A DNA stretch of 64,000 nucleotides from Blastocystis sp. Blastoise (lineage: Eukaryota; Protista; Bigyra: Opalinata). The position numbers and the translations under genes were made by a program. Position 1 is the first letter of the stretch. Each line of letters opens with the position of its first letter. Location of the stretch: positions 62,001-126,000 of the forward strand of contig JBBPEB010000030.1 in NCBI GenBank assembly GCA_039096225.1, written 5' to 3'. Shown here piece by piece: positions 57,227 through 63,200 of the stretch. The notes under the pieces are model-generated. The model saw nothing but the letters and a program-made list of their open reading frames with translations, had not been told where the DNA came from and ran no database searches.

Positions 57227-60200
57227 TTATTCTTTCATATCAATATCTTTATTAGAATCAACTTCTTCATCATTCGATTGTTCTTCTTCTTCTTCCATAC
57301 CTTTCTTAACATCAAATTCAAGAGTATATTCCTATAAAAAGAAAATTAATAGAATAATAATATATATATAACAATAAAATTAATAATATAACAATATATA
57401 TTCTTGATCACAACCTAAATAAGAATCAGTCATAAAGTATAAAGTATAAGAATAATGGCCAGGTTCATCAGGAGCATTAAATTGTAACTTTGTACGATTT
57501 TCAGCTTTCAAATTAATAGATTTAATTGTATGAATAACATTACTTTCATTATCACCAACAATAAGCCACCACATTTCTTTCTTTGGAATAGGATAAGTTT
57601 GACTAGATACAATACCAATAGAACTAGGATCCTCATCTTCATCAACATCTCTAGTTAAATGAACATTTACAGTAACAACATCATCTGTTGTTAATGTATC
57701 TATATCTTCTATTTCATGTTCTAACTCTATAGATGGATAACTATTACAGAAAGTAGCTATATCTCCAATTTGTTGTTCAGTTAATCCTTTCAAATATTGA
57801 TTTCTTTGTTCATCTTCACATTCAATGATATCAAAAATACCTTCAACACCTTCAGCTTCACAATCTTGAGCTCTATCTTTATCAAAATGAGGTAATTGTA
57901 ATAAACGACTATCTTCAGCCCACATACCTTGTACAATCATCTGACATAATTCAATAGTAGCTAAAACAGGCTTTAAGTATGAAGAACTACTAATAATATC
58001 TACTAAACATTGAAGTAAACGAAGAGATACACTTAATACACCTTCAGTATCTAATTTCATATCACTAGACATAAGCTTACGAGAGAAATAATTTTGTAAT
58101 AATAAATTCACTTTTTGACCTGTTAATGTCTTATTTTCTACAGGATAAGGAAGAGAACGAATATCTTGTCGTATAGTATCTTGTTCATTATGACGAATAA
58201 TAATATCATCAAATTCAGAAGCAGAACATAATATTTGTAATAAACCCTTTCGCTTAGCTTTAGGTTTAATCGATTGAGCAAATAATTCAATAGTAGTATA
58301 TTGAACATAATAATAAGCAGCAATCATACCCATATTAACAGCAGTAAGTTCTAATTCATTCATCTTCTTAATAAGTCCAGCATCAACCAAAGAATTAATC
58401 GTTTCTTCTGTTAATTCAGAAGTATAATCAGATAAATGATCCGCTGATACACCTTGTAATCCATAATAATTAGGATTCTTAAGTAGACGACGGAATAAGA
58501 ATGTCCATGTTAAATAATCATTAGCATCTTGATAATTATCTATAGAACGACTTACAATTTCAGCATTAAATAAATCAGCAAGATTCAAATATAATTGACT
58601 TTCTAGAGGAAGAGGTTCATACAAGAATTTCTTAAAGAATGCCTTTTTAGGTGTATGACAGAGAACGACACATTTACCTACACTATCAACAGAAGGACGA
58701 CTAGCATGACCAATCATTTGAATCATTTCATTAATAGAATAATCAACATACATATGTTCCTTACCATCATAATAGGTAGTTTCCATAATAATAACAAGAT
58801 GGGCTAGCTCTTCTAAACACCAACAACAATCAAAAGTACTCACTAGAACTTGAATCTTTTCTTCATGATATAATTGAAGAACAATCTTCTTATCATTTTC
58901 ATTCATACCCTATAGAAACATAATATAAATTATGAACTGTATAAATAATAATAATAATTTAAAAGATTATATAATATCAGTAGTGGTTAAGGTTAGTATC
59001 ATGAGGTTTCCCCTCAAAAACACGGACCAGTGGTATCCTCATTTAAGAATATATATATATATATATATATATAACACAGATAGTAATAAATATTCTTATA
59101 AGTAATATCAGTAGTGGTTAAGGTTAGTATCATGAGGTTTCCCCTCAAAAACACGGACCAGTGGTATCCTCATTTAAGAATAAATATACTACAATGTAAA
59201 TGTATAAATAAAAAGAGATGTCAGAAATGGTTGCTAGTTTGATCATAAGGTTCCCCCTCAGATAAAACACGGACCAATTTATCATCATTCTCTCTTTAGT
59301 AATACACATTATATATATATAATCAGAAAATAGAAATAATAATAAATATCAGTAGTGGTTAAGGTTAGTATCATGAGGTTTCCCCTCAAAAACACGGACC
59401 AGTGGTATCCTCATTTATTTATTATTTAATTTGATAAAAAATAATTTAAAATAATTAAATAATTGAAAAAATTAAAAAAAAAAAAAAAAAAACAATAATA
59501 ATAATAATAAGAGTGTCAGAAATGGTTGATAGTTTGATCATAAGGTTCCCCCTCAGATAAAACACGGACCAATTTATCATCATTCTCTTAAATTATTAAT
59601 ATAAAATATAATCAGAAGTATCTGTATATCAGTCATAATATACATAAATATACATTCTTACAATAATTGTTATTACATCATATTAATAAATATATCATAA
59701 ATAGATAAATCATATAATATACATACCTTATAAAAGAAACCAATACCAGCAAGTAAAACTACTTTAAGAGCAGGATCTTGAATCGACTCTGTAATTTGTT
59801 CAATATCTTCTTTGGTTGTATGTAAGAATCGAGAAGCATTATTACTAGCACTAGCATAAGTTAATATATCAACACTAGTCATTTGAGCTTGTTTCTTAGA
59901 AGGAACAAATACAATAGTAGATTTAATAGTAGCTAAACTAATAATACTATTATACATAGGTTTACTCATTGCTAATAAACGTGTACCTACATGATTAATA
60001 TCAAATCCTTCTATATGCATTTCAAGTGGAACAGGACGAACACTACTGTGGAAATTATATAAAGATCGTTCACAAGTTAACCAATCTGATAAAGAACGAG
60101 CATTAGCCACGGATGTTGACAAAGCAATAATACGAACTTTCTTTTCTAATTGATTTGTCATATATCGTATTCTTGATAATACAATTTCATAAATATAACC

Positions 60201-63200
60201 CTTAGGAGAATTAATCATATGTAATTCATCAGCAATTACTAAAGAAATCGATTGAATTGATTGTTTTTGTTTCCATCTTCTAGAAATACGATCCCATATT
60301 TCAGGATTTGTAATAATCAAATTACTTTTAGCAACACTTGATTCATCGATACTCATATCACCCATTAATAACGATACAACTAAACCAAACTGTTCAAATT
60401 TCTTCCAATCGTTATAACGAAGAATACATAAATCTTGTATGGGAGCAATATATAATATTTTGCCAGTATCTTCATCAGCAATATGTTTTAAAATAGCTAA
60501 TTCAGCAGCTATAGTCTTACCAGATCCAGTAGGAGCACAAATAAGTGTATTATTATCTGTTTTATATATACTATCAAAAACTTGAGTTTGAATAGGATTA
60601 AAATGAATAAAACGATCATTATAAAGAGATTCAAATTCTTTATTCTTTAAAGCATAAACAGGTAAAGGAGTTAAATCTAATAATTCTACATTAGGATGAT
60701 ATTTTTCAGGAAGAAGTAAATGTCTAAAACTAATTGTATGAATAGTTTCAGAATGTAACCATTTATCATTTATAATTCTTAAGAAATATTGAGGTGAAAG
60801 AGGATCAAAGATAGGAACAGTAAACACTAGAGAATGCTCATTTTCAAAATACTTCTTCTTTAATAAGAAATATTCATAATGAAGTATTTGTTCACCATCA
60901 CCATCTTCGACAATAATATGAAATCCTTCACTATTACCATGATATTGTTCATCATATTTGAAATCAGCAGTTAATAATAATTCGACTTTCATAAGAGATC
61001 TAGTAATAGGTTGTACTTGTATTTGACAATCCATACGAGGAATCATATGAACAAGAGAATGAACTTCACTACTTAATTTACTATTACGAACCATTTCACC
61101 GAAATCAGAAGGAGTAATATCATAATAACGTTCAAAAGGTAAAGGATTATTTTCTAATAAATTCAAAGTTTGTTCAGATAATCTACCTTTAAATTGTCTT
61201 AAAGGAGATTGAGAATACCATAAGCGTTTATCAACACATTTACATATATTCAATATCTTTTGAGAAACAGCAGACCAACCTCTCTTTAAACAAATTTCAA
61301 ATAAAGCTCTAAAGATACGACCAGCACTTTGTTGAACAAACACCATATCAGCAGCTAAAGCAAATCCATCTAATTTTTGTTTACTTATATAAGCTTGTAA
61401 TAATACATTCACCTTAGCAGAAGGTTCTTCTACAGTTTCACGAATAGGAATAGGTACCTTTTGAAGTAATTTTTCTAATTCTAATTTTTCTTCTTGTCTA
61501 ACAATAATTTGAGAGAATTCATTAGATAAAGAGAATAATCTAAATATTTCAATATCACCCATAGTTGGCTTTAAGAATTCATTATAAGTAGCAATAGAAG
61601 GATTCGTAATATAATAATAAGCAGCAGTACGACCAAGAGCAGTACTTTGGAAAACACCTGTTTTACGTTCATATTTAATAAGACCATGTTTAGCTAATAA
61701 GGTAGCAGCACTATGAACAAGATCTACACGACGTTGTAATAAAATAGGATCATGAACAAGTTCATCAGGATCTACACCATATAACTCAGGATTACGAAGC
61801 ATACGAATAAATAAATAAGTATATCCAAGCCAATGGACAGCTTCACTAACATTCTGACAAGTACCAATAACAATTTCAGCATTTAAATTATCGGCTAACT
61901 TTTTAATATGTTGAGATTCAATAGGTAATTGTTGATTCATAAGAGATAAATAATATTGAAGTTCACTATGTTTTGTAATAATAATACCTTCACCTGTTTT
62001 ATCATATTGAGGACGTCCAGCACGACCTAACATCTGTAAGACATCTTGAGGACTTAATTCAACCCATTGACCTTTTTCAGGACTATACATTTGTGTACCT
62101 TTTATAATAACAGTATGTGCAGGTAAATTTACACCCCAAGCTAATGTCATAGTACTGACTAAAACAGGAATACGACGAGCAGCAAATAAATCTTCAACTA
62201 AAGAACGATCATCTCTAGTAAGACCAGCATGATGGATAGCAAAACCAAATGGTAACAATTCTTGTAATTCTTTATCTTTACAATTCTTAGATTGTTCTTT
62301 TAATAATTCTTTTTCACCACTATTTTCAGGTACAAATTGTCCTAAAGTATCTTCATCTAAAGACATATCACGAATAGCACGAGCAGTCTTAGCAGTTTCT
62401 TTTCTTGAATGAACAAAAATAATTACTTGATTCTTACCAGCTTCAGCAAGTACTTTTTCATAACAGATTTTATTCATTAATTGAAGAGCTTTAAGTGGTT
62501 TCTTTTCAGTAACACCAATATATTGTTGATCTAAACCAACAGGACGATACGAATTATCAAAGAAAAACAATCCCTTTTCAGTAACACGAAGGAAATTAGC
62601 AACATCAACATAATTAGGAAGAGTAGCTGATAAACCAACAAGACGAACAAGTTCCTATAGAAAATAAAAAATATATCTAAAAATATCTTTACATAAAAAT
62701 AGAAAAATTATATATGTAATAAAATAAGATATATAATAGACTGAAAATATCTATCGAGCAAGAGGACCTTCTGTTCAGGGAAATTGCAAACCAAAGGTGA
62801 TACATGCTCGAATTGTTTTTTAAAATAATTAAAATAAAAATATATATATATATAAATAATAATGACAAAAAAAAAAGCAATATAAATAATATATACTTGA
62901 GTAGTTTCAATTTGTCTTAATGTACGTGCAACAATAGCTTCAAGAACAGGACCACGATCATCATGTAATAAATGAATTTCATCAATAATAATTAATCGAA
63001 CAAGCTATAATATATAAATAAGCATAAGAAATAATATATAATATACTTGAGTATAAGTTCTTTCACCACTCTTACGAGTAATAATATCCCATTTTTCAGG
63101 TGTTGTAACTATGATTTGAGTTTCACTAATTTCTTCTTTAGTAAGATTAATATCACCAGATAATTCTCGAACAACAATTCCATAATAAGATAAACGTTGA

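Follow-up and report, generated by a model that had tools for sequence, protein, structure and literature searches.

Can a box C/D small nucleolar RNA (snoRNA) direct the 2'-O-methylation of G18 (Gm18) in a transfer RNA (tRNA), a modification that is normally made by the SpoU-class enzymes Trm3, TARBP1 or TrmH? The question is raised by a stretch of 64,000 nucleotides (nt) from Blastocystis sp. Blastoise (contig JBBPEB010000030.1, positions 62,001 to 126,000), which we refer to as the window and which has a G+C content of ~24%. One intron of the window carries five U18-like box C/D snoRNAs on the minus strand, three of them identical copies (type A) and two paralogues (types B and B'). A first-pass annotation had proposed that the second guide of type A points at G18 of tRNA-Ser, and that such dual guides for ribosomal RNA (rRNA) and tRNA may install Gm18, possibly in place of Trm3. 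We find that the type-A D guide matches tRNA-Ser in register, and we put the probability that it directs Gm18 on tRNA-Ser somewhat below even.

The type-A D guide and tRNA-Ser

The intron and the five snoRNA copies are arranged as follows; boxes and guides are given in the 5' to 3' direction of the minus strand.

58909..59725, minus strand: 817-nt intron of BRR2, host of all five snoRNA copies (RNA contigs and flanking homology)
58973..59047, minus strand: type-A copy A1, U18-like box C/D snoRNA (Rfam SNORD18 33.9 bits, E 2e-4)
59042-59036, minus strand: C box AUGAGGA of A1, followed by an 18-nt D' guide
59017-59014, minus strand: D' box UUGA of A1, followed by a hairpin (GAGG/CCUC)
59002-58997, minus strand: C' box AUGAUA of A1
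58996-58981, minus strand: 16-nt D guide of A1, CUAACCUUAACCACUA
58985, minus strand: N5 of the A1 D guide
58980-58977, minus strand: D box CUGA of A1
59104..59178, minus strand: type-A copy A2, body the same as A1 (D guide 59127-59112, D box 59111-59108)
59345..59419, minus strand: type-A copy A3, body the same as A1, with a 9-bp terminal stem (SNORD18 38.2 bits; D guide 59368-59353, D box 59352-59349)
59217..59293, minus strand: type-B paralogue (C box AUGAUGA 59288-59282, D' box CUGA 59261-59258, D guide AAACUAGCAACCAUUU 59240-59225, D box 59224-59221)
59512..59588, minus strand: type-B' paralogue (D guide 59535-59520, D box 59519-59516)

The 18-mer AACCTTAACCACTACTGA occurs exactly three times in the window, always on the minus strand (58977-58994, 59108-59125 and 59349-59366), compared with 0 in 100 shuffles. 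The first-pass annotation had placed the same D guide and CTGA in all three type-A copies. This is exact: AACCTTAACCACTA-CTGA, that is D guide plus D box, has three occurrences, all within the three identical snoRNAs. The span it had singled out (58977-59001) takes in the D box and D guide completely and C' for the most part. Each type-A RNA has terminal C and D boxes able to form a kink-turn as well as internal D' and C' boxes. In the C box AUGAGGA, the G at box position 5 and U2 of the D box can, as far as the letters tell, form a pair like that in the kink-turn of U4 small nuclear RNA (snRNA).

Counted upstream from CUGA, the D guide reads A (N1), U (N2), C (N3), A (N4) and C (N5). The complement of N2-N12 is AGTGGTTAAGG, giving 11 Watson-Crick base pairs (bp) with tRNA-Ser AGA, TGA and GCT. 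In these tRNAs AGTGGTTAAGG covers positions 14-24 (A14 G15 U16 G18 G19 U20 U20a A21 A22 G23 G24). In standard tRNA numbering, N5 (C) stands opposite the first G of GG, i.e. G18, and the D+5 rule selects this nucleotide just as the first reading of the locus had claimed. The D-loop that it had given for tRNA-Ser is also borne out: tRNA-Ser(GCT) reads CCGAGTGGTTAAGGCG, in exact agreement, and Ser(AGA) and Ser(TGA) read CCGAGTGGTTAAGGAG. For all genome-wide searches we used 33.3 Mb in 34 contigs. We counted 17 sites of AGTGGTTAAGG, made up of the three snoRNA copies, 13 tRNA-Ser genes and one site antisense to a messenger RNA (mRNA). Outside the snoRNAs, 13 of 14 sites are hence nuclear tRNA-Ser genes (AGA nine times, TGA once, GCT three times). 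tRNA-Val(TAC) and tRNA-Gly(CCC) have only AGTGGTTA in common with this match. The duplex between guide and tRNA is uninterrupted over its 11 bp, ends beside the D box and has a Watson-Crick pair at N5. Its energy of -18.0 kcal/mol is close to the -21.2 kcal/mol of the 12-bp rRNA duplex formed by the same snoRNA. Few positions of tRNA are conserved sites of ribose methylation; G18 is among them, and Gm18 is present in yeast tRNA-Ser (review PMC5372735).

In order to estimate how often such a match arises by chance, we shuffled the type-A D guide 200,000 times and counted perfect in-register 11-mers. In a 7.3-kb AT-rich panel of rRNA and snRNA, 1.2% of the shuffled guides reached one. The corresponding rate against tRNA, scaled from five tRNAs, was 2.6e-4 per kb, or ~1e-3 per guide for a tRNA set assumed to be ~3.5 kb long. 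For a match on one of the ~five conserved ribose-methylated (Nm) tRNA positions the chance would be about 15-fold lower still. With an estimated ~100 guides per genome, a tRNA match for one or other of them would cause little surprise (a ~10% chance). A match that falls exactly on G18 of a tRNA that bears Gm18 in yeast is surprising.

We then asked which other RNAs the D guide could serve. The first-pass annotation had named a better rRNA or snRNA target as grounds for dropping its proposal. There was no in-register match of 8 bp or longer in the small-subunit (SSU) rRNA, 5.8S, large-subunit (LSU) rRNA, external and internal transcribed spacers (ETS/ITS) or 5S, nor in U1, U2, U4, U5 or U6. The guide could be directed at an RNA beyond this panel, for example an mRNA, a long non-coding RNA, the RNA of the signal recognition particle (SRP), RNase P/MRP, telomerase RNA or another snoRNA. 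The panel covered the rRNAs, 5S, five snRNAs and tRNAs, and near-matches exist elsewhere in the genome. None of the three best non-tRNA sites (whole genome, at most one mismatch) is a known RNA, however, and we regard a target of this kind as very unlikely.

A second possibility is that the guide binds tRNA-Ser or its precursor for a purpose other than methylation, such as a folding chaperone for a tRNA with a long variable arm, quality control or processing. U3, U8 and U13 all act without guiding 2'-O-methylation. The complementarity described above would serve such a role equally well, and for many contacts between snoRNAs and tRNAs Zhang et al. bring up roles other than modification (PMC10576143). 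In that case, however, the register would place N5 opposite G18 only by chance, and the boxes look competent for positioning fibrillarin; we see only a slim chance for this explanation. Even taken together, other roles and other targets of the D guide are unlikely.

The three best non-tRNA sites were rejected as targets on the following grounds. A 14-nt match at C22:606750 was discarded since the complementary strand is untranscribed; the mRNA at this place is not complementary to the guide because its ATG start is on the opposite strand. A near-match at C16:1244089 is an AT-rich repeat in non-coding DNA. Finally, ~35 copies of TAGTGGTTAGGGTTA on contig C25 belong to telomere-like repeats in the spacer of the 5S ribosomal DNA (rDNA), outside the 5S rRNA.

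U18 identity and the type-B paralogues

In Rfam, each of the five copies fits RF00093 (SNORD18) best, by a margin of more than 13 bits. The scores range from 32.0 to 38.2 bits (E 2e-5 to 7e-4) and a default Rfam scan is blank because they stay under the gathering cut-off of 41 bits. Scanning the organism's own rDNA we found that the type-A D' guide forms 12 bp with LSU AAACACGGACCA and places N5 on A670, the U18 site. The type-B D' guide forms 15 bp with LSU (-23.7 kcal/mol) and places N5 on A667, three nt upstream of the type-A site. In type B the U18 antisense core is kept and three extra bases before D' move N5 from A670 to A667; a second, neighbouring methylation is therefore predicted. 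Since the D' guides pair with LSU at the U18 region, all five copies are, judged by sequence, genuine homologues of U18, and their rRNA guide looks functional.

The likeness to U18, SNORD18 and yeast snR18 lies in the GGUCCGUGUUU guide upstream of D', which pairs with LSU AAACACGGACC and sets N5 on the U18 adenosine, and with U18/SNORD18 the copies also share an intronic location. They differ from the SNORD18 family in the type-A boxes (C box AUGAGGA, D' box UUGA), in the presence of five copies within one intron and in the type-B target that is shifted by 3 nt. The D spacer is longer than that of the consensus and unlike it, and it is this spacer that provides the match to tRNA-Ser. Type A contains the hexamer ACCACU at two places on the minus strand, namely towards the 5' end of the D' spacer, where it is unpaired (59035-59029), and in the D guide (58986-58981). 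The first of these is probably ancestral and unrelated to tRNA because the SNORD18 consensus has a conserved UCCACUU that it matches.

The three type-A bodies are 100% identical over 73 nt and their flanks cannot be aligned. Because the bodies are identical while the flanks no longer align, the whole type-A body, D guide included, appears to be kept. This indicates selection or gene conversion acting on the entire body including the spacer.

The boxes of types B and B' are canonical (AUGAUGA and CUGA), and their terminal stems measure 6-7 bp. The two types differ from each other at a single base, which lies inside the D guide (N10 is U in B' and G in B). The complements of the two D guides are AAATGGTTGCTAGTTT and AAATGGTTGATAGTTT. 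As had been claimed for them, the type-B complement begins with AAATGGTTG and N5 falls on the first G of TGGTT. This holds as a description, but no nuclear tRNA has that D-loop. Near-matches of the type-B D guide across the genome are at chance level, and with tRNA-Ser it forms only 8 bp, two of them G-U (-8.9 kcal/mol). Type B thus provides no independent evidence, as it has no tRNA match, a weak duplex and a guide that differs between the B copies. TGGTT and TAGT are common to the D-guide complements of A and B, which would most simply be explained by common descent of a duplicated spacer and not by separate targeting of G18.

We also screened the genome for further snoRNAs with D-loop guides, as had been suggested by the first-pass annotation, and found none beyond type A. 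The broader screens with CCRYT and CCRRYT returned mostly chance matches or rRNA-type guides and no convincing D-loop guide. One candidate guide at C34:819038 was rejected: its complement AGTGGTAGAATC has a single further site in the genome and departs from the multi-copy AATGGTAGAATC at N3.

Several stretches with TGATGA, a spacer of guide length and CTGA resemble additional box C/D snoRNAs. The guide complement of the one at C20:569416-569447 (minus strand) begins with AAATGGTT, like the type-B D guide. The others lie at C16:1240358-1240418 (plus strand), C16:1266317-1266366 (minus strand), C18:794670-794702 (plus strand) and C34:71611-71672 (minus strand). On C22 near 762,000 (L056:2278-2361, minus strand) there is a SNORD35-like candidate with 28.5 bits (E 0.005), which is below the cut-off. 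The short contigs C9 and C12 share one dense set of tRNA genes, with the orientation reversed between them, and probably represent two assemblies of the genome of the mitochondrion-related organelle. This set includes a tRNA-Ser(UGA) with the D-loop AGTGGTTGAAGG.

Protein enzymes, known guides and the weighing of the evidence

Another line of evidence concerns the protein that could make Gm18. The absence of TRM3 had been named as a check on the proposal, and indeed a canonical long Trm3/TARBP1 (C-terminal PF00588, ~1,400-1,600 amino acids (aa)) was not detected, although an exon-by-exon search could miss a split or divergent gene. Only two loci in the genome carry PF00588. One (L079) is Mrm1/RlmB-like and the other (L078) is the following.

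C4:877640-880930, gene ~879101-879939, plus strand: two-exon SpoU gene L078 with PF00588, product P0121

P0121 has 217 aa and a TrmH-like single-domain architecture; its gene has no upstream open reading frames (ORFs) and no paralogue in the genome. It shares the SpoU domain with Trm3/TARBP1 but lacks their long N-terminal region. For the comparison with known families the exons of L078 were searched separately, and P0121 is the database's own full-length record. Against NCBIfam P0121 scored 70.9 bits for TrmH (cut-off 227) and 71.6 bits for RlmB, both far below the curated cut-offs. The PDB scores were 47.3 for an rRNA methylase, 46.5 for RlmB, 45.1 and 43.8 for TrmH and 32.3 for TARBP1. Exon 1 alone favoured TrmH, and a look-up of the SpoU exon in the ESM Atlas returned 'SpoU' only. 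The substrate of P0121 may be TrmH-like or RlmB-like, because it scores about equally against both. The family to which P0121 belongs consists of short proteins (~200-270 aa) that also occur in data from other protists and in metagenomes; Polarella, a dinoflagellate, has one member, and an MMETSP transcript and a Tara Oceans cluster are others.

A general takeover of Gm18 by a snoRNA ribonucleoprotein (snoRNP) would lead us to expect guides for the other Gm18-bearing tRNAs. With no such D-loop guides found and a 217-aa SpoU enzyme that resembles TrmH as much as RlmB, the suggestion that the guide replaces Trm3 is weak, and we consider it distinctly improbable. Of the dual rRNA/tRNA reading, the U18-type D' guide and the 11-bp in-register match to tRNA-Ser stand, and the support expected from type B does not.

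A number of further observations weigh against methylation of tRNA-Ser by the type-A snoRNAs. A duplex of 11 bp is close to the lower limit of length for guides, and since the folded tRNA has G18/G19 and G23/G24 in its interior, pairing would be restricted to precursors that are still unfolded. One base of tRNA-Ser(CGA) is mismatched to the guide (AGTGGTTAATGG). The identity of the copies may stem from gene conversion rather than from selection on the guide. The type-B D guide has no nuclear tRNA partner, only an organellar tRNA and chance matches, and this targetless and variable guide implies that the spacer can drift. A genome-wide search for a C box followed by (A)ACCRCT-N-CTGA retrieved the type-A copies only. 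As a TrmH/RlmB-like enzyme, P0121 could itself make Gm18. Finally, predictions of snoRNA-tRNA pairs in fungi, and the nematode and Plasmodium predictions cited with them, were presented as unconfirmed (PMC2780460).

Several of these points fit an explanation in which the D guide is an orphan or a relic. The match to tRNA-Ser would then be coincidental, the identity of the copies would result from recent duplication or gene conversion, and the only function would be rRNA methylation of the U18 type. The Rfam consensus of SNORD18 differs from the D spacer and has no complementarity to the D-loop, U18 of N. crassa is listed with a D' target only (PMC2780460), and the related spacer of the type-B paralogues is targetless and has one substitution. 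At ~100 guides and ~1e-3 per guide, there would be a ~10% chance of one tRNA match; no further D-loop guide was found and P0121 exists as a candidate protein enzyme. However, a coincidence would have to fall exactly on a known conserved Nm site, for which the chance is the ~15-fold lower one. It would also have to account for a spacer that is unchanged in three copies with saturated flanks and for a tRNA duplex as stable as those of accepted guides. Our estimate for this explanation lies not far short of one half. Even if the tRNA match is a coincidence, the locus is a tidy, amplified and diverging U18 cluster in one intron.

If the type-A D guide does act on tRNA-Ser, we propose the following course of events. 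The type-A snoRNAs are U18 (SNORD18) homologues that would be released from the spliced BRR2 intron, and by sequence their D' guide directs fibrillarin to the U18 site, a conserved adenosine in LSU. The D guide would pair through 11 Watson-Crick bp with positions 14-24 of the nascent, unfolded tRNA-Ser(AGA/UGA/GCU). This duplex would set G18 opposite N5 and the same snoRNP would 2'-O-methylate G18 of the serine tRNAs. Such an activity would most likely be specific to tRNA-Ser and would supplement a protein enzyme, or serve as its reserve, instead of taking over Gm18 synthesis as a whole. The stronger version, in which a Blastocystis lineage without canonical Trm3/TARBP1 obtains its serine-tRNA Gm18 from a nucleolar U18 C/D snoRNP that also methylates LSU rRNA, seems to us possible, if rather unlikely.

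Gm18 stabilises the contact between the D-loop and the T-loop of tRNA. To our knowledge it has been attributed only to stand-alone SPOUT enzymes (TrmH, Trm3, TARBP1). Guides for other positions of tRNA are known, and in the snoRNA-tRNA papers that we consulted we found no report of a guide for G18. SNORD97/SCARNA97 guides Cm34 of human elongator tRNA-Met (Vitali & Kiss 2019, PMC6601510). Cross-linking has revealed hundreds of snoRNA-tRNA contacts, which include rRNA-guiding snoRNAs and have hotspots at positions 10, 22 and 34 (PMC10576143). The target of SNORD113-6 is the 3' part of tRNA-Leu, downstream of position 64 (PMC9547152), and snoRNA-tRNA duplexes have been predicted for Neurospora, where predictions for nematodes and Plasmodium are also cited (PMC2780460). 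What our case has in common with SNORD97 and the contact network is a eukaryotic box C/D ribonucleoprotein (RNP) with an ordinary antisense guide against a tRNA. Those systems concern positions 34, 22 and 10 and are backed by experiment, whereas our case is a predicted target, G18 in the tRNA-Ser D-loop, in a stramenopile.

The closest parallel may be found in Archaea. Renalier et al. reportedly described in 2005 that Cm56 of Pyrobaculum is made by a small ribonucleoprotein (sRNP), the enzyme aTrm56 being missing. As in our proposal, one lineage relies on a guide RNP for what is otherwise the task of a stand-alone tRNA 2'-O-methyltransferase; the differences are the domain of life, the position (C56) and the fact that the archaeal case was shown by reconstitution. 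Archaeal box C/D RNPs do methylate tRNA (PMC6009581), and in this paper, which gives guide sets of Pyrobaculum, the terms G18, Gm18 and D-loop did not turn up in a word search. If the proposal for Blastocystis is true, proven eukaryotic snoRNA-tRNA targets would be extended from the anticodon region to the structural core and one snoRNA would serve the maturation of both ribosome and tRNA. In the stronger version, it would also be the first eukaryotic guide RNP to assume a modification of the tRNA core that is elsewhere the work of a dedicated SPOUT enzyme. Enzyme and guide RNP would then be interchangeable, which would be a eukaryotic parallel to archaeal Cm56.

The host intron and its genome

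Blastocystis sp. 'Blastoise' is a tortoise isolate that was grown in culture by its describers (PMC12129017). Tortoise Blastocystis isolates have AT-rich genomes of 26-33 Mb with long introns (PMC12129017). The ORFs on either side of the snoRNA-bearing intron belong, by homology, to BRR2, the 200-kDa helicase of the U5 small nuclear ribonucleoprotein. In contigs from two independent RNA studies 58908 is joined to 59726, which skips exactly 58909-59725. The intron ends read CT..AC on the plus strand and therefore GT..AG on the minus strand. Within the intron, RNA coverage (contigs from polyA or unspecified libraries) consists of short pieces over B' and the A2/B spacer.

We looked for the locus in other data sets as well. 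A protein search for a sister genome gave 62% identity for the closest BRR2 exon match. The protein search with a neighbouring gene returned only the genome's own protein, the MPDU1-like neighbour had no close relative and an exact look-up of one window ORF gave no record. In metagenomes, the exact pattern of the snoRNA had at least 120 matches, and among the matches listed none was snoRNA-like, i.e. had a U18 guide or a C box upstream. One of the contigs matched (L144) stems from a human-gut metagenome and was left aside. The BRR2-intron locus is contained in a gut metatranscriptome. In the polyA gut metatranscriptome run X2 (window 58300-60300) we observed a strain that is ~1.5% diverged in the BRR2 exons. 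The splice junction of this strain is as here, with a minor alternative joint from 59608 to 59727 that has 18 foreign letters in between; its contigs cover parts of the locus outside the type-A guides.

A last observation concerns the repeats near the 5S genes. Contig C25 carries a tandem 5S rDNA array at ~990,000-1,048,000 (L026-L050), with more than 30 units and a period of 900-970 bp. The 5S spacers contain degenerate telomere-like TTAGGG/TTAGGGG repeats, and TAGTGGTTAGGGTTA lies ~385 nt upstream of each 5S gene. The contig ends bear repeats of the TAGGGGTTAGGGTTA type.

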